Below, piece by piece: positions 29,701 to 59,118 of a DNA stretch of 64,000 nucleotides (positions are counted from its first letter, which is position 1; each line of letters begins with the position of its first letter). The notes beneath the pieces were generated by a model that searched no databases, was not told the DNA's origin, and saw nothing but the letters and a program-made list of their open reading frames with translations. A program made the translations under genes and the position numbers. The stretch lies in the NCBI GenBank assembly GCA_964270895.1, contig OZ185448.1. One strand, 5' to 3'. Source of the stretch: Podarcis filfolensis (Eukaryota).

Positions 29701-32700
29701 AAAGCCAAGTTTTGTCAGAATTTTAAAGACCCCAACACCTTAAATTTTAAGAAATATAATGGTATTTTTATCTATATTTTCTTGCCCCTCTGAGGGAACA
29801 AGGATATCATTCTCTGTACACAACTGAGGGGAGAGGGTTTGCTCAGAACTAGCGGCTGTGGATGAGGACATGGCAGAAGGGGAAGCTCTCGTCCTGCCAC
29901 AAGGGACACACCTTAGCAGGCTCTAATCTTCTCCTAGGATGGAGAGAACAATACTCCATATGTCAGGCTAGGAGGCTGCACATTCCTTGCTGACAGCGTA
30001 AAGGATTGTGGGTTTGCTTTTCAGTCTTTCTGCCTCGTCCCAGTGGCGAAGAATCAAGCAGCGACGAAACCAGCAATCGTTCCAGCCCCACCCTGAGGCG
30101 ACGACGTGCGAAGAAGAAGTTGGTCTCAAGTTCTGAATCAGAGGATGTGCCACCTCTCGAACAGGAGACCGAACAGGCCAAAGAGCATTCGCACAAACAT
30201 CAGTTCAGTAGTGGCCTTAATAGGTGCATTATCCTGGCATTGGTGATTGCAGTCAGCATGGGCTTCGGGCATTTTTATGGTGAGTACATGAATCATCCTT
30301 CATTGAACTAATAAGAAATACGTTTTTAAACCAGTGGCATTTCCTCACAGGGTGCCGTAAAGACCAGATCCTTACTTGCCCTATCCCCTGCAGGCCAAAT
30401 TTGAGAGATGGGCAGCCCTGACATTGCAATGATCGTCAGGACTTCAAAGCAGTTAAGAGAGTTGTTGGTATATGGAACTTAGTTTGAGGACATTTACATT
30501 CACATCTTAACAAGCAAAAATCCCTACTTGGACTTGCAAGTGCCCAGGTTGTGCCTTCAGACCAGTCGCCTAACTTGCAGGGTCCTTGTGGGGAAATTCT
30601 CTTGCACATTGTCCTCAGCTGCTGGGTGGGAAAGTGGGATATAACAGAGACTGACAATACAGATGAAAAGAGATGTGATTCTTACAGCTGGAGTGTATGT
30701 GTGCATGTTTTCCCTGCCTCCCTGTCAGTCTGCAAGCTGAGGGAGAAGTCTCAGTTAACTGAGGCTCCTAGGCAGGATGGGTGACCCATTGATTTGACCC
30801 ATTCCACTGACACACTCTTGCTTTGTGTGTGTGTCAGTTTGAAATTTAGTTATAAAATCCAGTCACTGATCCCCTGCCTGTGTTTTGTGGTTTCTGCTGT
30901 TTATCCCAAACATAGTAACCAGTCATCTAAAATAGAGAAAGTCCTGTGCGCAAAATTCCTTTAGTTGACGACCCAGATTCCTGATGTTCTGTTCTAGTAA
31001 TACCATTTTTAATGGTGTGTAAAAAGAGACTAAAGATTCTTGACTGAGTTATAAAGCATTCAGTAGAACAACCTTAGAGCAAAACTTAACACCTATCCAT
31101 TATTTTGTCCTCAGGGAAATATGAAGGTAAGAGGCTTGGTTGGAATGTGTTGCTGTGAAACAGAGGCCAACGGCCTTTTCCCTCACCTTCTCACTCTGAC
31201 ATGCTTTTTGACTGTGGATGCTCTAGCACAGGGGTAGGCAACCTAAGGCCCATGGGCCGGATGTGGCCCAATCACCTTCTCTGGGTTATTTCTGGGGCAT
31301 AGGAATTCGCTCATTTCCCCCCTAAAATATAATCCAGCCCACCACATGGTCTGAGGGACAGTGGACTGGCCCATGGCTGAAAAAGGTTGCTGACCCCTGC
31401 TCTAGCAGATTAACCTTGTTTTCCACTAGGGGGCATCATTGCAGGCTTTTGGACTTGGGCTATTCAGTCCAGCTCCTACATTGGGAAACATTTTTTCATT
31501 ACTTTCTGGTTCTCTGGCGGTAGCATGCACATTTTGATGTCAACACTGGAATTCCTGGATGGGAGGTGTGTGTGTGCCGCTTGTATAGGAGAATCAGATT
31601 AGCCTTTTGCTTCTTGAGAAGCTAAATGTGCCCGCTGGGCCAGTAGTTTGTGCTCAGGCACTTAACAAAAAATTTCTACAGGCTTGTGTGGATTCCAAGC
31701 ATCCTGTTGCTGCTGTCACCCCTTGTACCTCTTCCATGATTCTTGAGACCAGTGTCCTTCCCCCTCCTGGGTGGACCTGCCCTTCATTGTTTGCAGTTGG
31801 TTTGTGCTCAGAGGGCAGGACTTTGAAGCAGCCTCCACCGCTCTCCTCCTTAGTCACTAACCCAGGTCTGGGGAGGATTTGTGGTCCTCTGGCTGATTCC
31901 AACCACTGGCCATGCTGGCTCTTGGTGTTCAGCAACATCTAGAGGGCACCAGCTTCCCTAGCCCTGCTCTCATGTCACTGAGTGAGCATTTGTGACATGA
32001 CATTGCACGATATAGATTTGCATGTAGCTGTTTTCATGTTATTTGTACTGATCGTAGTACTTCATACATTTCACCTTTTCAGAGAGGAATGTATGTTACA
32101 GGCTTTCTTTGTCCAAATTGATGCTGCTATTGTAATAGATGTTCTAAGGAGGCCTGACCTGGATTTGCCCCTCTGATTTTGCTGTTTTGCTAATACAGGG
32201 TAATGTGCAGCTGTGCACAGGGATACACTGGGGCTTTGTGAGCCCCATCAGTCTGTTCATTTAATGATGGATCAGTGTCTTTGCCACTGAGCTTAGCTTG
32301 CTTTCATCAGCATAGCGTTCATGCCTTATTTTGTTAATGCAAAAGTCTAGCATAGCTGTTGCAAACAATTAAAAAAGTGACCGTTTTAAACTACACTGTT
32401 CACTGATTAATGTACTTATGAAGGACTGAAGAGAAAAAAGCCATCATCACTGATAAGCTGCCTAATTTCCAATTTTTCTTGTCAGATAAAAGAGAAAATT
32501 TTCTGTTTCAAGGTACTGTTCAGATCCAAAAACGCCAGCAATTGGTTGAGAAAACTCATGAAGACGAACTGAATGGTATAAAGGATAATCTTATTCAGTG
32601 CCAACAAGAACAAGGCATGAAAGCAGAATGTAAGGTAAAGGTGGCTTTCCCATCATACTTGAAAGCGAGGATGATATTTTGCCTTTGGCTTCCAAACTCC

Positions 32701-35335
32701 ACCTCCATTGGGAAACTTTGCTGTCATTACTACCGCAAGTGTTGGAAGCTGTCTTCTAGATGAAGGCATGGCAAAATCCAGTCTTGGCATAGCAGGCAAT
32801 TTTGAACTGGTTCAGTGTCAACCACAGAGGGTAGGAGAAGATGCCATTGTATCTGCTTCTTGAAGCTTTTAGAGTGGTTCAGCAGATTATTCTGTAGCAA
32901 GGGCTGGGTAGTCCCAATTGCCACTGTCCTTGCCTTGAGCACTTTCTCCCCAGAAGCATATCAGCTTCCTCTGTGCTTGGCCCATGTAGGCTCCATGGCT
33001 CCCCTCCTCCTTCTGGGACTGCAGCCATGCACCTTGCTGTGGACAGCTGGCCCCTAAACACACCACTCCCAGGCAACGTTTGTGATGTTTTCTATCAAAA
33101 GTGGAGGAGACTCTGCAGGCTTTGTGGGGGAACGTACAACTCTGCACAGCCTGTTCCCCCTGCCCCTAGAGCAAGTGCCACAGAAGCTCCTTACTAGCCC
33201 TATTTATCCATCGATAGGTTGGCTCCTGCTTAGCTGTCCTTCTCCACCCTCCCAATGTCCTTGCAGCATTTGGACACTGGCACACAGCAGCTGATGTGTT
33301 TGCTTTCATTTTGTCTCTGATCAGTCTCTAAAGGAAGGCCTTGAAACATGCTTGCATACAACAGAAGTGGAAAAGAAATCCTTTGAATCTCAGAAGCATC
33401 ATCTTGCTTCAGAAAACCAGCACCTGAGAGAATCTCTAGAGAGGGAGGAAAAAGCTTTGGCATTGCTGCAAGAAGAACTGAGGAAGCTGAGAGAGCAGAT
33501 TCGGCACCTGGAGAACAAAGGTTCTGGCCCAGAGTTGGTTGCCACCGAGAATCAGAAGCTGAAAGCCCACCTGGAAGAGGAAAGGCACCGCATGCAGAGT
33601 TTTGTGAAGCAAAAGGAGACTCTGTTGGCAGAGGCCCAGATGCTGCGAAGGGAACTGGACAAAGAGCGCCAGCTGACGGTGGCTCTCAGGGAAGAACTGG
33701 ACAAGTTAAGTTCTCAGCAGACGTCTCCTGAGGGGGCAGGTGCTGGCGATGAGAGCCAAGAAATAGAAGCTTTGCGGGGTAGGCTGACTGAGCTGGAGCA
33801 GAAGCTGAGCTTCGAGCAGCAGCGTTCTGACTTGTGGGAAAAGCTGTATGTTGAAGTCAAGGACCACGCCGAGAAGAAACAGCAGACCGAGAGGCCACAG
33901 AAGCCAGATGGGAAAGGAACCAACAAAGCCAAAAAGAAGCCAAAAGGAACATTTTTTGGTTCTGTGAAAGAAACCTTTGACGCCATGAAAAATTCAACAA
34001 AGGAATTTGTAAGGCACCACAAAGAGAAAATTAAACAGGCCAAAGAAGCCGTGAAAGAGAACTTGAGGAAATTCTCCGATTCTGTGAAGTCCACCTTCAG
34101 GCACTTTAAGGACACAACAAAGAATATATTTGATGAGAAGGAGAAGAAAAAGTACAGTGACAGCAGGCATGAGGTGAACAGAAAAGGGAAAACAGGCAGC
34201 TCCCAGGAAGGGTTACACAAGCAGGCGGCCCACCGCTCACCTGGCAGCCAGAGAGAGTTTAGAGATGGAAGGCGATCCAAAGAGAGCCGCTCCCCTCCGC
34301 ACTTCTCCAAGGACCCTCCCTTCCAGGAATGCCCCAAAGGTAACAGAAAGCATCGCCCTCTTGTTCTCAAGGGATGTTCGGGCATCTTTGACTGTGCCCA
34401 CCAGGAGTTTTTAAACCTCTTCGACAAAGACTTGGACCCGATTCGAGCAGATGAATTTAACCAATTAATGCACAAATATTTGCAGCAAGAAGTAAAGAAC
34501 TTCCACCACTGGCGAGAACTGGAGATCTTTGTGAATAGGTTTTTCCGTAATGGCGTCTTTATACATGATCAGATGCTGTTCACGGACTTTGTTAATGACG
34601 TTAAGGATTACCTTGAAGACATAAAAGAATACCAGAGGAACAGGGATGGTGTATTTGAAGACCTGGATAAATATATCTACCGATACTACTTTCATTATGA
34701 TCACTTGCCTGAGCACGGACCAAGGTTAGTACTAAAATTCTGCTAATAATTTAAACTGGGCATGTTTGAGTTGTGAAAGAAGGAAAGCTGCTTCAGCTGG
34801 CTGGCCTAGCAGGTTATTTCCCTGTTTGTTTGAGCTTTGCAGTTGCTGCTGGGCAGACAAGGAAAGCCTCCCTAAAGAGGGGTGATTATGCCATCCTCAA
34901 ATAAGGGCACCAGTTCCATTGTATTTTAAGCACCACAGTACAGAATTTCTAATGTAGCAAAGTGGCAGCGTGTGTCAAAAGGAATGGAAGGAATTCCATT
35001 CCACCCACTTGCCGTATCCACTTTGCTTATTTTAAATAACAAAGTTGGTTGTAGCCTTTCGGGGGAGTTAAAACGTTTGGGGCATTGGGCTTAAGGCCTA
35101 ATACTGAGGTGCTCATGCAGCCCTAACTTCCCTTCTGTACTTTCCTTTCAGCCACCCTGCTAGGCGGGCTCCTTTCACGCACCCTCATAGTCCACAGCAG
35201 GACAGACATGCTGCAAAGCACCAGCATCGCTACAAAAGAGAAGGCCGGTGGCACAAGCAAGGGCGCAGCAACGGAAGACACATGGCAAATTTGGAGATAG
35301 AATTGGGCCAGATGCCCTTTGATCCAAAGTATTAA
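23757..35335 (+). CDS. CCPG1: Cell cycle progression protein 1, type II ER membrane ER-phagy receptor; 814 aa long isoform, or 760 aa if exon 8 reads through to the stop at 34746
   Basis: Coding exons: 23757-23816, 24480-24606, 26179-26258, 26863-27079, 30025-30279, 32513-32634, 33325-34724, 35152-35335. All introns are GT-AG and phase-consistent; 2445 nt in total. Matches to recalled human CCPG1: [17 protein letters not shown] (LIR), [10 protein letters not shown] (FIR), TM segment [19 protein letters not shown], and the C-terminus [17 protein letters not shown]. Confidence 0.97.
24960..25173 (-). mobile_element. tRNA-derived SINE (MIR/L2-tail type)
   Basis: Contains TTTATCCTCACAACAACTGTGAGGTAGG and the reversed B-box GGGATTTGAACC. 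It is the same family as the insert at 13197-13420. Confidence 0.7.
25441..25638 (+). mobile_element. Tc1/mariner-type MITE
   Basis: Perfect 18-bp TIR CAGTGGTACCTCGGGTTA with a TA TSD on both sides. Related copies lie at 47513-47738 and 59119-59343. Confidence 0.92.
31229..31399. mobile_element. hAT (Charlie-like) MITE
   Basis: Termini are CAGGGGTAGGCAACC and GGTTGCTGACCCCTG, with a perfect 8-bp TSD, CTCTAGCA. Confidence 0.9.
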
Positions 35336-36156: not shown

Positions 36157-39100
36157 TCAAAGATGCTTTTGATTTCTTTTGTAGACATGAATGGAGCTCC
36201 CGATCCGTCCTTGAGGCAGATGAGTGTGAAAAAACGTGGCAACTTTTTCATACCTATTTGTAACTAGAAATGATGATATATCCTAGAAGTAAAAAATTCA
36301 ATATTCAAGTAACAGTTCTGGACCAAACATCAGGGTCCAGCAATCAAGAATTGAGGAAGAACCATCATTATGCCTGGCCACATTCATTTTTCCACCATTT
36401 ATTTTGAAGATCGGAGGGGAGGGGAAGGAGCACTGTAGAATTGTATATTGCTAGGAGGTTAAATTTCCAACCCAATTTTGTTGAGCCACTAACAACTTGT
36501 ATTTTCATAAAAGTGGAAAGAGCACAAATCCATCATCTGTATTCACTGCTGTAAAGGCCAGTTGTTGTCAACCTTTTTGGACCAGTACACATTTTTTTTT
36601 TTAATTTTGAGACAGTGCTACAGGCACCAGTCACAAAATGGCTGCCATAGAGCAGGACTATAGTTCATCCCAGAAGAGTGTGTGAACACACACACACACA
36701 CACGCACACACACACACACACGCCATCGCAGGCACCACCACACTGACTATCCTTGCTATGGCCTGACCAGTTCAGGTGCTCTGAATTTCTCCACATGGAA
36801 CACGTTTTGTGGCACCATTTTCTGATAGTTTATTTTCAACGGTATCACAAGAGGAAAAATTAGCTGGATCAAAGAGAACTGTGGACAAACCAAAATGTGA
36901 ACCCTTCCTTACACAGTGTGGAGTTCACGGGTGGAAATAACTTCCAAGGTGAGGTGATGTCTGTTAGCTTTAGTGGCACAGAGGAGGAGAATGAAGCCTA
37001 TCAATTCAGTCATGGGAGGAATATGACCCCCAACTTCAGAGGGAGCAATGAGAGACACAGACAGTTGGTCTCATCCAGTAGACTCTTTTTACCTTCTTAA
37101 ACACATGTATGCTCTTCCCTCCCCATCCCCCGCTTTTTGGGACCTTCTGGGCTATGCAGCATTCATTCATTTCCCACCCTCCACCCCAAGGTCCCCTGGT
37201 GGGTCACAATTTCAAAACAACAATAAAAACAGTTTAAAACAACTTATGCTTACACCCTCTGTAATCATCTCGTTCATCTCCTTGATGAAGATGCCAACGG
37301 GTGTGCGCGATGCCCCACTGAAAACAATGAGACTGGGATTCTTCTGCACTTGCCTTACCTGCTCAAGCACACTGAAGAACACCAAGTGTGTGGGTAGCAG
37401 CGTAACATTGGAAAACGTTTCACTGAGCCAGCTGAGAGGGCCTGCATAAAATAAGTCGGCTTCATCAAGGTAATTTGCCCTTCCGGTCAAATCAGGGGGG
37501 CACTGAAGAAACCTCAAAGGTAGTGGGCAATGAACATGGCTAGAAAGGGGGGGGGGAGAAACAGGCATTAATACAAATGGCTGAGGCTATTTTGCATTAG
37601 CAAGCGCTGGCAGCGCTTCTTTTCCACATGCTGATCTGAATACACACATACCCGTGTCTGTGTTTGTTATCAATTGAGAGGCACAGCAAAAATAAGACCT
37701 GCAGGATGGGTGGAAAGGGCTGAAGGTGACTTTTCCACACACTGCTGCAGATAGTCCCCATGTCACCAGGTGAAGACAAAGCGTGAGGCAGTGGAGACTT
37801 CGGAATCGGAAGTGGCACTGACTTTACAGGCGGAAAGACGGGGAAATGGCTCAACAGCTAGAATACAGTCAAGGTTCCCACAATCCCAATAGGGGCACAA
37901 CTTCCAGGGTCCCCTCAAGTGTGAAACTGGCTTAAGGTGCTTGGGCAAAGTGTTACACAGATACAGGGTTCTGGGTTCTCTATCTCAAGCTCTTTGCATC
38001 AGTTCCAGCAACAGCTGCTGATCCAGCCATAAAGACACAATTAAGCCCACAAAGGCTGCTCCTGTTACAAAAAGTATAGCACAGAGGTGTAGACTAATAA
38101 GGAGTCAGTTTAAGGAGAAACATCTTCTAAAGGCTGATCGCATCAGCGTGAATCCAGCATAACTATTTAGAGGACAATCCTATCAACAGTTGCTGGCAGG
38201 CTGTTCCAAAGGCCAGGTCAGAAGGTTGCCCCACAGGATTGCTGCAGCCACAAAATCTCCACAGCTGTCCCTTTCAGCAGAAAAGTGAAATTCTGGGGGT
38301 GGCTTTACCAAATCCAAAGCCTTTCTGTTCCCCTGACGTAACCCAGAAGGATATGGAAGTATGCTAGTCCCGGAGCTGAGATCAACAGAAAGGAAAAAGG
38401 CCAAAGAAAGAGGCGGGAGGGAAATGGCAGCTCCCCTACCCCAATGCTTTTTGCCCTCTTGGTGTGATCCCAGGAGGGCTTTTGGTGCAGTTCCTCCACC
38501 TTGAATTCACCTTCTCCTGCCTCCTCTGAATTGCTCTGGCAGTAAAAGAGCAGAAAAGCTGCAGATTCCCATGCAGAGTGCCACCAGAACCTCACACACA
38601 TACACCCCCCGATGGGTCTTACCTATAAAAAGGAGTTGAATGGCAGGGCATGAGCATGAAGACGGATGCCGGCTGCTCTGCAGAGTCAGCAGGAGCACTG
38701 CAGAGGCTTTGCAGGTGGCCCATGACATCCAGGGTTCCACGCTGATGGACCAAGCCAGTGTAGAGGGCGGGCAGCAAGTTTGTCACCAGCAGGAAGGAGA
38801 CGGCTGCTGCCCGCTGCCACCTTTTCAGCTGCTTAAGAGAATGCCCTACGGGGAGGAGAGGGAAGAAAGCAGAAAATGGAGCAGATGAATCTAGGGTCCT
38901 TGAGATCAGGGACCTGAGCAGTTCCAGAGACTTCCAAACAGCAGCATGGTGGGGCTTTCCTAACACCTAAAGATCCCCTTCAAAGACCCTTCCCCCTTTG
39001 GCTCAGCCCTGAGGCATCTCATCATTCAACTTCCCCTTCAGCTTGGCCTCCCTCCCTTCCATCAAATGTCTGAGAGCTATTTCTATAAAGACTGCCCAGC

Positions 39101-42100
39101 CTTTACTTTCATTCCTGCCTTGGAAAGAGCCCAAGCACTAAACCTGCCAGAAGCCACAGCTGAATCTTTTTTTAAAAAAACAACAACATTGTATGTAGAA
39201 GATGTACTTATTAATCAATGCGAGTGAAATAATGTGTCACTATTGGACAGTTTGCTTTTACAGGTACGCTGTTTTGATGGATGTCAGCCAATTTGGACAC
39301 AATGGCAGCATTTTTTCCTGCACTGACACACACAATCTCTGTATCAAACCATTTAAGATGCTCATTCCCTTTAGAAGAAGGAAGCAGTATTTCAAACTTC
39401 TCAAAGATGAGACACATTTTGGCACTAAAACTTCCACAACAGCAAGTTTTTCCTTTAGAGTGAAGATTTAACAACACCATGAATCCAAATATATCGACCA
39501 ATCGGGACAAATGTAAGGTTATATGCAGGCAGGAAGAACCAACTGCACAAATACGATCTAGAATCAGTGTGATGTAGCAGCAAAAAACCCCTAATGCTAT
39601 ATTAGGCTGCATCAACGGAAGTATAGTGTCCAGATGAATGGAAATAATAGTACCACTCTATTCTGTCTTGGCCAGACCACACCTGGAATATGGTGTCCAG
39701 TTCTGGGCACCACAATTCAAAAAGGATATTGACAAGCTAAAATGTGTGCAGAAGAAGGCAACAAAGGTGATAAAGGTTCTGGAAACCAAATCTGGGGAAC
39801 GGTTGAGGGAGTTGGGTATGTTTAGCCTGGTAAAGAGGAAACTGAGAGGAGGTAAGATGGCCACCTTCAAATGGGCTGTCACATGGAGCAAACTTGTTTT
39901 CTCCTATTCCAGAGGGTAGGACCTGAACCAATGGCTTCAAGTTACAAGAAAGGAGATGTCAACTAAACATCAGGAAGAACTTTCTGAAAGAGAGAGCTGT
40001 TTGGCAGTGGAACAGACTTACATGAAAAATTATGGACTCTCCCTACTTGGAGTTTTTTTAAAGCAGAGATTGGATGGCTGTCTGTCATGTATTATTTGTT
40101 GTACATTTACTGTATGATCTATTTGAGATTCCTGCATTGCAGGGGGTGGTACAAGATGACCCCCAGGGTACGTTCCAGCTCTACAATCTATGATTCTATG
40201 AAACAGCACACAGAAACATCATAATGTGTTTAAAATCAAAACGCTTACCACAGAACACCATGCAGATTGGCAGCACTGGGTAGATAAAGCGGAATTCTTT
40301 GTGGCTCAGGGTGCTGTAACACAACAGGAAGGTGTAAATGGAAGGTTCTCCTAGGCGTCTTCCCAAGCCCAGGCCTCTTCCCTCAGGAAATCATCCTTAG
40401 TCCAGAAAAATCTGCCAAAGGTCCTCCCAAGTCACAGAAGCAGCCAGCTGATGGGGCCACAGCCCAATCCAAACGCTCCCTTGAGCTGTGATGGAGGAGC
40501 CTGCCGCCAACATGGGAAGCACAGAGGACTGTGGCAGACTATACTGTCCCGAGGCAGATTTTAAAAGTAAGATTCCTCAGCCACAGGCCTGGGCTATATA
40601 TTGATATATCACCCAGGACCAGTATGAAGGGCAGACTGCGATGAAAGCTTAACTCAGCGATACATCACACGAGCCAGCGGCAGGGTGGGGGCTCCATTAA
40701 AGTGCCCCCCCAGCTGAGAGCGCCCCAACCCTGCTGCTTGCAAGCCTGTGCCAGGGTGCGGACTCCGTTAGACTCCCCCCTCCCGACCTGCCAAGGTGGT
40801 GGTGGCTGCTGAGGCAGGCCCCCGAATGCTTGCCTCATCCGCCACTGCCTTAGCATAGGGGTCAGGCGGGCTCAGATAGGCAGTGCAGAGACAAAGCGCA
40901 GATAGGGTGACTTTGCACCCCACACCTTGCAGAGTGGTACAGAGGCTGTCTGATGCTGGTGCTGGGGCAGAGGCAGCCTTGCTTGGCTACCCTGCCTTCA
41001 TCTGTCCACGAGGATGAACTGCGTCTTTCCTCCCAGGGTGGTCATTCACCCCAGGAGGAAAGATGGAGCCCACTCTCCCGGGTGAAGGCAGCAGCTGGGC
41101 CCAGCGCTGGCCAGCAAACTCAGGCAGCCCTGCTCCACAAGGTGCAGATAGAGTGGCTGTGCACTCCACACCCTGCGGACTTCACTTGGGAGGGTGGACT
41201 GCATTTTTCCTTCTGGGCTGAATGACCACCCCAGGAGGAAAGACTAGCTCTCCCCTCCCATCCACCAGCACAAGGAGGAACAGAGCCAGCCCAGCAGTCG
41301 GAACCAAGGGCTCTGGTCACCAGCTGCAGCTTGAATCAAACTTTTCCAGAGCAAGTGGGGCTCCCAACATGCCATCATAAAAGCTACCCCATCTGGCTCC
41401 ATAAGAAGGAGAGGCAACAGTGGCTACCATTTTGCTCTGTCCCTCCCACCACCGATCCACCAGAACACCAAATGCTGAACTCTGTACAAGAAATGGAACC
41501 CACATTTTCTTCCTATTGGATTTTAAACAGTGAGCTGGCTCTTCTGGCACATTGGCAGGAAGACAGCGTTAGAAGCACCCTAAGCAAACTAGCCAACAAA
41601 TCTGAAGGAGGAAATACCTGGCACAGAGTTCTGTGGTGTGGAAGGAAGCCTACCTGTAAACAGCCACCGTCCACAGCACCACCACCAGGAGTATGCCATG
41701 CCTCTTTGATGCTTGGAAGCAGCCATGGAGAAAGAAGGGGAGGTGAGGGCCAAGGACCACAAGGAAGCCCTGGGTGAAGTACCAGTGCCACGGGTGGGAT
41801 CCGTAGAAGGTGGCCACATTCTGCAGCACGTTAAACTTCAAAAAGTTCAGTTGAACCAGGACCCACTGCAGGAGCAAAGAAACAGCAAGCAAACAAGACA
41901 GGCTTTATAACAGGAGAACTGTGAGAGGAGTGGTGTATTTGTCCTGACAATGCTTTTGTAAGCTTAGGATTGCTTCCTCAACACATCCCACTGCCAAGGG
42001 AATTGGAATCTGGAGCACCAAATCCATCAACACAGCCTAAGCATCTCTTAACTATCCCTGCCACTGATAATTGCCAGAACTCTCCAAAGAGAACGGCTGG

Positions 42101-45100: not shown

Positions 45101-48100
45101 GTACCACTTGGCCTGAGAGAATCTTCTACCAGATCCCAACTCATTCTGCATAGTGCAGCCAGAAGCGGGGATGAGGAAAGCAAGAGACAGACGGACAGCA
45201 GGCAACAGCCCCCCACCTATCATTGCCCCCCCACCATGCTAAAAGAGGGTGGTTCCTGCCTACCCTTCTCCATGTTACCACTGGACAATCCCCAACCCCC
45301 CTCCCACCAACTCTGGTATTTGCCTGCATGTCCTCAGCAAAGGCGCCATGAGATATGCTTCTGTGGGATGAAGCATAAGCATAACTAGATAATTCCTGCC
45401 ACAAAAGCAAAATGCTTGATGTGTTTCTGGCAGCAGCTGAATGACACCCAAGTCCACACTCACCAGCAGCTGAACATCATCCTTGTTAAGCAGGTGCAAC
45501 ACTTTATAAATGCTTGCGAACAGCAGAGGGTAGAGATGGCTCCGCAGACCTTCTGTCCACTCCCAGGTCAAATAGCCATAATTATCATCATTAAAGATAT
45601 CATAAAGAACAGGCATGGAGCATGGTGTTATGTGGCCAACCTCCAACAAACTCATCAAAATTCAACTAATGTAATATTTTAGGGCCTTTGACAATTACTA
45701 AATTACAACTACTCCCACCTGCTGAAAAACTGAATCTTGTTCCACCCAAACCCACATCTCAGATGTGTCAAGAGTCATCCAGCTGGCACGTTCCTGTGGC
45801 AGGAAAGAGCCTTTTCCAATACCAGTTTGTGTCTCAAGTTCCTTGTATCTCAGAGCATGCTGGAGGGAGAGGGAAAGGAATGGGCAGGACTTCAAGGAAA
45901 CCATCCAAGCCCCACACCTGAGCTTCAGGGGCCTCTGAACTGCCTAACGCTTCATGACAACTGACAGTCAAAATGGCCCCGTTGTGACAACATGATAAAA
46001 TAAGAATCCTTCCAAGCCTGATCCTATTCACTCCAGGCAGCCTACATGCTTCTTCCTAGGCCTCCTCTAACCGGCTACCTTAACCCAGCCACAACATGCT
46101 CAACCACAGCCATGTTCCTTTACTTCATAAATCTACATCCCACTATCACAGAATTCAAGGCTGCACACAGGTAGTTTCCAAAGGGGCTCCTATCCAGGCC
46201 CTGACCCAAGACTGATTTCACTTCAACAAAGTAGATGCCCTAGGCCAGACTTCCTCAAACTCGGCCCTACAGATGTTTTTGGCCTACAACTCCCGTGATC
46301 CCTAGCTAGCAGGACCAGTGGCCAGGGATGATGGGAACTGTAGTCTCAAAACATCTGGAGGGCCGAGTTTGAGGAAGCCTGCCCTAGGCGACTGCAGGCA
46401 GCAAGCCACTCCTAGGACTGAACTTGGATTTACTCTCAAGTTGTGCAGCCCAACAGGACAGTCCAAAGCATGTTGACTTTATGCTGAAGCGAGTCCCATT
46501 CTGCTCAGTGGGACCTACTTCTGACCTGTCCTAACTAGGGAAAACTTTCACTTAAAATTTCAGTACATAAAAAAAGGATATTTGAAAACCATATGATGTG
46601 CGACTTCAAGTGACTGCCAATATTCATCTGGGACAAAGCTTGTCTGGACTAAGAAGCAGTTTAGTAGCCTCACCATGATGGTAAACAAGCACAGATAAAG
46701 GTTTTCCCCAACAAGAGCTGGAAAAAAGCAGATGGGATTAACCTCGTGTACAGTGGGTTTTTTACGGTTATGTTGTAATCAACTGCAAATAAATAAACCT
46801 TGGATACCTTTTGGGAGTCTTATTTCAATTCTTGCCTTGCCTCCAAAGCTGTGAATTGTTTTCTCAGTATCACAGAATCATAGAATTGCAGAGCCTGAAA
46901 TGACCACAAGGATCATCTAGTCCAACCCCCTACAATGTCTTTTGCCCAATGTGAGGCTTGAACCCATGTCCCTGTGATTAAGAATCTCATGCTCTACCGA
47001 CTGAGCTATCCCTTGTCAGGAATTCTAACATCCCTTAGTTTGTGGACAACTCTAAAACTGGCCTTTGTACCACAATCTTAGCAAAACAGAACCTTGATGG
47101 TAGAGGGGGGGAAACCTTGACTTTTCTCTAAATTAGAACTGACTTTCTTCTCTTTGAAGAGGCTGAAACAAAAGAGGCTCTTCAGAGATGAATCTACAGT
47201 CACATCTAAAGAGCTAAGTGAGCACTGAATCCCCCAGGCTCCTGAGTCCTGGAATTTTCCTCACTAGGACTCCACAGAAAGGGTCAGCTGCTGGGGCCCT
47301 GACTAGCAATGCTACCTTTGCTAAACTAGGAAAGGCTGCAATGACCTGGGGAAGGTGGCCTCAAAGGGGGGGACAAGGACAAAGTCTCCAGATTTGAACA
47401 GGTTTTTTTCCAGCAGCCATGCCTTTAATGGTTTCAAAGGAGAATAGAAGTGGCTGAGAGACAGCTATGACTATACACAGTAAGATGCCACAGCTGCCCT
47501 TGCTGTGCACTACAGTGGTACCTTGGGTTACATACACTTCAGGTTACAGACTCCGCTAACACAGAAATAGTGCTTCAGGTTAAGAACTTTGCTTCAGGAT
47601 GAGAACAGAAATCATATTCTGGTGGTGTGGCGGCAGCAGGAGGCCCCATTAGCTAAAGTGGTGCTTCAGGTTAAGAACAGTTTCACGTTAAGAACGGACC
47701 TCCGGAACGAATTAAGTACTTAACCTGAGGTACCACTGTTCTGGCCTTCTTCTGGGCAGCCACCAGGGCTTTGCTCTGGCCACAGATCTACAAAAGGAAA
47801 GCACCAAAGCCACCAGCTCCTGCCCATCAGGTGCCATGTGGCAGCAACAGCGCTGTCATCTCCCAAGCATCTTGGTGCTGGAGGAGGCAGAGGCAGCAAG
47901 TGCAAAGTTCCTCCCTGCCCCCATCAAGCATCCTGTAACCCAGCAGGAAGTTCTCTTGCACAAGGGCCACAGATGTGAACAGGCATCACTGCAGCCTTGC
48001 GCGCCTCCCACGGGGAGTTTGTGCAGGAGACCTTCCCAAGGGATGGGGCCTCCTCACTGCCTTTTGAGGGACAAACATCCCAGGGGCCAAGAGTCCCCCA

Positions 48101-50630: not shown

Positions 50631-50762
50631 CAGTCATAGGCAACCTTGGCCTGCCAGATGTTTTGGGACTACAATTCCCACCATCCCTGACCACTAGTCC
50701 TGTTAGGGATCATGGGAGTTGTAGTCCCAGAATATCTGGCGGGCCGAGGTTGCCTATACCTG
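50631..50762. mobile_element. Palindromic MITE related to 46246-46381
   Basis: TIR ATAGGCAACC / GGTTGCCTAT and internal inverted GGGACTACAA / TTGTAGTCCC. The TSD is only partly preserved (TAAGT). Confidence 0.8.
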
Positions 50763-58918: not shown

Positions 58919-59118
58919 NNNNNNNNNNNNNNNNNNNNNNNNNNNNNNNNNNNNNNNNNNNNNNNNNNNNNNNNNNNNNNNNNNNNNNNNNNNNNNNNNN
59001 NNNNNNNNNNNNNNNNNNNNNNNNNNNNNNNNNNNNNNNNNNNNNNNNNNNNNNNNNNNNNNNNNNNNNNNNNNNNNNNNNNNNNNNNNNNNNNNNNNNN
59101 NNNNNNNNNNNNNNNNNN
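58919..59118. other. Assembly gap of 200 N
   Basis: Run of N. Confidence 1.

Follow-up and report, generated by a model that had tools for sequence, protein, structure and literature searches.

The window, a stretch of 64,000 nucleotides from Podarcis filfolensis (contig OZ185448.1), carries on its minus strand the gene for GPI mannosyltransferase 3 (PIGB), a GPI-anchor mannosyltransferase. Exons were searched singly: one exon ORF was compared with a representative protein library, an exon-sized query being used because the word search sees only proteins of similar length, and pigeon PIGB was then taken as the word-search query. Four exon peptides matched the Pfam profile PF03901 (Glyco_transf_22) with E-values ranging from 7e-19 to 5e-9, and identity of the exon peptides to the PIGB proteins of two lacertids, Podarcis muralis and Lacerta agilis, was ~96%, which places the window in a lacertid lizard. 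Neighbors of PIGB observed within the window included PIGBOS1 and a putative CCPG1. A long open exon of 464 aa (33352-34746, plus strand), with coiled-coil and lysine-rich character, is convergent to PIGB and, judged by the human gene order, looks like the large CCPG1 exon. At 58919-59118 the window has 200 consecutive N, an assembly gap or a masked stretch.

Exon 2 of PIGB (46582..46717, minus strand, 136 nt) begins after an acceptor reading ...TTTTTTCCAG|CT at 46718/46717, the exon 1 donor being GTGAGG, and its 3' end reads ...CAT CAT ATG GTT TTC AA on the minus strand, with the last base at 46582. This terminal AA provides the first two bases of a split Asn codon, which is completed by the first base (T) of exon 3 (45464..45581, minus strand, 118 nt). 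Exon 3 opens T TAT GGC TAT TTG ACC TGG GAG TGG from 45581 on the minus strand and is followed directly by GTGAGT. The exon 2 peptide covered positions 2-37 of the Glyco_transf_22 profile and the exon 3 peptide positions 39-77, and thus a single residue, that of the split Asn codon, is encoded across the exon 2/exon 3 join.

Between these exons lies intron 2 (45582..46581, minus strand, 1000 nt), for which the assembly letters give AT at 46581-46580 and AA at 45583-45582. A script scored every donor/acceptor pair against the Podarcis muralis protein, and frames were enumerated together with their joined junction codons. Four equivalent cut placements were found to give the same mRNA, none of the four having GT-AG or AT-AC ends, and the U12 5' consensus stood at the intron start only in the placement 46582|46581 ... 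45582|45581. The AT-AA junction reproduced the Podarcis muralis protein across the join (17/17), and the five lacertid PIGB models of the protein database (from Podarcis muralis, Lacerta agilis and Zootoca vivipara) all share one 14-residue string over the join. Introns 1, 3, 4 and 5 as well as the last four introns are all GT-AG, which leaves intron 2 as the one resolved intron with other ends. The coordinates and letters that the original prediction gave for both intron ends were all correct on re-reading the sequence, and its claim that a sole junction restores the conserved FNYGYLTW agrees with the unbroken Pfam numbering (37 | 38 | 39) and with the lacertid models (5/5). For the AT-AA junction in the lizard, and for base 45582 in particular, the grounds are sequence and orthology.

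The first nine nucleotides of the intron (46573..46581, minus strand) read ATATCCTTT, an exact match to the U12-type 5' splice site consensus RTATCCTTT, and from 46581 the 5' side of the intron reads ATATCCTTTTTTTATG..., or over a longer stretch ATATCCTTTTTTTATGTACTGA. This consensus starts at the very base where protein homology stops, placing /RTATCCTT at the intron start, and the predicted arrangement of an exon 2 ending in GTT TTC AA followed by the U12 5' consensus was borne out at every base (9/9 at 46581-46573). On the 3' side, the sequence up to 45582 reads ...TCTTTAATGATGATAA, with longer stretches ...ATATCTTTAATGATGATAA and ...CTGTTCTTTATGATATCTTTAATGATGATAA. A branch-point motif, TCTTTAAT, was observed at 45590..45597 (minus strand), separated from exon 3 by a spacer of 8 nt. 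Its candidate branch adenosines, 45592 and 45591, are at -11 and -10, in line with the distance of about 10 nt first proposed between a branch-like motif and the junction. The position of TCTTTAAT agrees with that of the printed human PIGB BPS and with the [VILFN]LN tripeptide of the vertebrate read-through models described below. The motif differs from the textbook TCCTTAAC by two transitions and from the TCCTTAAT of human and mouse PIGB by one, and this single transition from TCCTTAAY should keep wobble pairing with the U12 snRNA. No U2-type polypyrimidine tract and AG were observed at the 3' end of the intron, the last 20 nt of which are GATATCTTTAATGATGATAA. From these signals we infer that the minor spliceosome excises the lizard intron and that it cuts at exactly this position.

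The remainder of intron 2 contained a palindromic MITE-like repeat (46239..46388, strand not assigned) composed of two 68-nt arms that are 84% complementary and 14 nt apart, with related copies at 1285-1382 and 50641-50752. This repeat is a passenger and forms no part of the splice signals. An Rfam scan of the whole window gave no match inside intron 2. A weak Rfam tRNA match was observed in PIGB intron 1 (46948-47009, minus strand) that scored 31 bits, the gathering score being 29, with no tRNA called there by ARAGORN; since a copy with 77% identity occurs at 91-202, the match is more likely a tRNA-derived SINE than a gene.

We also examined how often the splice motifs would be expected by chance. 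The 8-mer ATATCCTT is not rare when taken alone: the window has five copies against an expectation of 1.8, and 4 of 100 shuffles contained at least as many. For a 5' motif falling on any of the four equivalent junction offsets, combined with TCYTTAAY 5-20 nt upstream of the acceptor, motif rates measured within the window gave a joint expectation of ~2e-7, and chance is therefore excluded for the motif pair at these positions. Three minus-strand copies located elsewhere were considered and set aside as chance occurrences. One of these (38347-38354) lies in the intron after the exon ending at 38623, while another (29800-29807) lies outside the mapped exons. The third is an exact second ATATCCTTT (39721-39729, containing ATATCCTT at 39722-39729), situated ~520 nt inside a GT-AG PIGB intron after the exon ending at 40250, and was taken as chance because no exon boundary is found there.

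The human counterpart of this intron has been published. PIGB intron 2 (NM_004855.4) is listed as a U12 AT-AA intron by de Wolf et al. (2021, EMBO J, PMC8280824, Datasets EV1/EV2), with the BPS CTCCTTAAT and then eight bases ending in AA before TTATGG. Upon CENATAC depletion the PSI of the human intron rose from 0.29 in controls to 0.55 at 24 h and 0.76 at 48 h (padj 2e-16; Dataset EV1), and ZRSR2-mutant samples had a PSI of 0.60 versus 0.20 in controls (padj 2e-7; Dataset EV2). The Minor Intron Database (MIDB) paper likewise reports the minor intron in mouse Pigb and human PIGB and treats it as conserved between the two species, with 5' scores of 96.5 and 99.5 and the branch TCCTTAAT (Olthof et al. 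2019, PMC6717393 supplement). The suspicion that the intron may already be catalogued was thus well founded, the lookup of MIDB through the PMC6717393 supplement and the PMC8280824 list both confirming it. Descriptions of AT-AA U12 introns as a class go back to Levine and Durbin 2001 and to Sheth et al. 2006 (PMC1557818), the latter reporting such introns in RASGRP4, FLJ21106 and MSH3 and a class of <1% of U12 introns that is often conserved between species (Tables 2-3). These three introns, in other genes, share with PIGB a U12 5' site and branch site with terminal AA, while PIGB is absent from the 2006 list. Canonical U12 AT-AC introns share the recognition signals and belong to the same CENATAC-dependent A-type class in human cells, but have C as the last base where PIGB has A.

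The lizard and human introns are alike in gene, codon position (F-N|YGY), 5' site ATATCCTTT, AA end and 8-nt spacer, and the lizard intron sits in the same split codon as the human/mouse PIGB minor intron. Their lengths are similar (1000 nt in the lizard versus 862 nt in human). Differences were observed in the branch motif (TCTTTAAT in the lizard, TCCTTAAT in human and mouse), in the six spacer bases before the AA, and in the MITE-like palindrome of the lizard intron. The primate sequence also has an AC 3 nt upstream of the AA which the lizard lacks, and use of this AC in primates would explain the chimpanzee 'isoform 6' model, which reads FNNYGY. Judged from its sequence and position, the lizard intron 2 is very probably the orthologue of the catalogued U12-type, A-type (AT-AN) PIGB intron 2. 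The proposal of a U12-type intron with AT-AA ends is upheld by the perfect 5' site, the branch motif 10-11 nt from the junction and the published human orthologue, and we regard the lizard intron as a real and ordinary copy of an already known, catalogued U12 AT-AA intron. That the major (U2-type) spliceosome splices intron 2 in spite of such unusual ends would have precedents in U2-type AT-AC introns (PMC8280824, PMC11347168), but is scarcely conceivable with a 5' site that matches the U12 consensus in full and is unlike any U1 site, a 3' end devoid of a polypyrimidine tract or AG, and a human orthologue that responds to the loss of the minor-spliceosome factors CENATAC or ZRSR2 (PMC8280824).

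The vertebrate comparison covered 115 PIGB protein models containing the YGxLTWEW motif, with intron ends deduced from amino acids and not from DNA. Exactly one residue, mostly Asn, was observed between ...F and YGY in 89 of the 115 models. The remaining 26 were aberrant at PIGB intron 2, with a wrong junction, read-through or a truncated N-terminus, as had been anticipated by the claim that GT-AG gene finders mis-annotate this intron. Mis-built models included those running into the 5' site (..F[KG]YP..), those running through the branch site ([VILFN]LNxxN), and those with residues added or dropped. The first kind is exemplified by the CRA_c model of the rat (...MVFGYPLCYGY) and by a Hydrobates model (...MVFKYPWRNNYGY). 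Two further models were without the region altogether, one of them squamate-like and missing the region of exons 1-3.

Thirteen models continue in frame across the 3' intron end, displaying [V/I/L/F/N]-L-N (corresponding to an NTC CTT AAY branch site), two codons, and then the junction codon, which is made up of the last two intron bases and the first exon base. This junction codon was Asn in ten and Lys in one of the thirteen, implying AA in 11/13. The AA-implying models came from birds (Oxyruncus, Donacobius, Molothrus, Piaya, Crypturellus, Apteryx) and from Gekko kuhli, the opossum Monodelphis, the bat Myotis brandtii, the frog Rhinophrynus and the sturgeon Acipenser. In the desman Galemys pyrenaicus (VLNVNT|YGY) the junction codon was Thr, equal to AC, and in the duck Asarcornis it was Ser (AGY or TCN). 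Comparison of terminal dinucleotides across vertebrates, proposed originally as a check, therefore favored AA, as deduced in 11 of the 13 read-through protein models. These models indicate an AA end and an 8-nt spacer that are probably old and widespread, with occasional switches.

The same comparison bears on whether the lizard intron could be an ordinary U12 AT-AC intron whose true base at 45582 is C, read as A through an assembly or consensus error. Among A-type introns the AT-AC ending is by far the most common, and the Galemys pyrenaicus model, in implying AC, indicates that the base can vary between species. Against this stand the publication of the human intron as AT-AA (PMC8280824) and the coding of AA in 11/13 read-through models from sturgeon to birds and mammals, on which grounds AA is the expected ancestral state and no error needs to be invoked. 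Since the AA end and 8-nt spacer appear old and widespread, we consider a consensus error at this base extremely unlikely.

Other in-phase acceptors were enumerated around the AT-AA junction. The original prediction stated that no in-phase AG or AC precedes exon 3; the first part of this statement stood, with no AG among the in-phase acceptors enumerated up to 57 nt upstream of the junction, while the second did not, an in-phase AC being present at 45627-45628 (minus strand). This AC lies 45 nt before exon 3 in an open frame and would add 15 residues, and no branch motif precedes it. An upstream in-phase AA at 45591-45592 (minus strand) also has an open frame, and its use, which would add Asn-Asp-Asp, is conceivable with a second, upstream branch-like motif, TTCTTTAT, at 45609-45602. 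A downstream in-phase AC within exon 3 (TTTGAC|CTGG; 45567-45568, minus strand) would give an AT-AC intron and delete YGYLT. The motif TTCTTTAT (45602..45609, minus strand), recognized from a duplex scan and the sequence, has its A at -22 and lies 12 nt further upstream than TCTTTAAT, outside the conserved position; it is possibly a backup branch site or a chance match. A crude energy scan of U12/branch-site duplexes put TTCTTTAT above the conserved site, a ranking that we judged uninformative because the bulged branch adenosine is ignored.

A U12-type intron whose main 3' cut in the lizard falls at one of these three sites (AA 45591-45592 with the TTCTTTAT branch, AC 45627-45628 or AC 45567-45568) would retain an open frame in each case, and the crude duplex calculation gives TTCTTTAT a pairing to the U12 recognition stretch comparable to that of the conserved site. 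Both the unbroken Pfam spacing and the orthologues conflict with all three sites: the profile runs 37, 38, 39 only with the 45581 junction, and one residue separates ..F from YGY in 5/5 lacertid and 89/115 vertebrate models. The upstream AC also has no upstream branch motif, and 24-25 nt separate the downstream AC from the branch A, past the usual U12 range reported by Dietrich et al. (2001, 2005; cited in PMC8280824). We consequently hold a main cut at any of these sites to be very unlikely. Minor use of the downstream AC would fit a 2026 preprint that describes for human PIGB an AT-AC 3' splice site with an adenosine matching the DRACH motif (10.64898/2026.10.16.759739). This description disagrees with the AT-AA label of human PIGB unless another isoform is meant. 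The AA|T junction cannot fit DRACH, whereas TGAC|C, the context of the downstream AC, would, and the site in the preprint may be that of an annotated isoform using the downstream in-phase AC.

With the cut at the AT-AA junction, splicing of the lizard intron would be expected to follow the steps established for the minor spliceosome. The U11/U12 di-snRNP would bind the 5' site ATATCCTTT, contacted first by U11 and later by U6atac, and the U12 snRNA would pair with the branch site TCTTTAAT, where the C-to-T difference from other vertebrates would replace one G-C pair with a G-U wobble. Distance would set the 3' cut, 10-11 nt past the branch adenosine and whatever the last base; the dinucleotide at that place reads AA in the assembly. 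ZRSR2 and CENATAC would probably assist, as in the human intron, and exon 2 (...TTC AA) would be joined to exon 3 (T TAT GGC...) with the Asn codon restored. If intron 2 were retained, an in-frame TGA (46560..46562, minus strand), which ends an ORF extending over 46560..46688, would be met; retained transcripts are predicted to give no enzyme because translation would stop at this TGA after 7 extra codons.

The basal retention of the human intron (20-29%) is compatible with an inefficient splice, and does not establish a limit on GPI-anchor synthesis. A further proposal is that PIGB intron 2 has kept its AA end and its exact 8-nt spacer since the last ancestor shared by ray-finned fish and tetrapods, as the read-through models from sturgeon to bat would imply, and that this conservation reflects selection for a weak, CENATAC-sensitive 3' site that tunes PIGB output by intron retention. 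We consider this proposal rather unlikely; if it were true, regulated retention of PIGB intron 2 would set the supply of GPI anchors, and the weaker branch site of the lizard would be a natural variant. The value of the observation is mainly in annotation: gene finders restricted to GT-AG fail at this intron, and the lizard annotation should force the AT-AA junction 46582|45581. Biologically, nothing suggests a new mechanism, and the lizard would add one more species to those known to possess a conserved A-type minor intron in PIGB.
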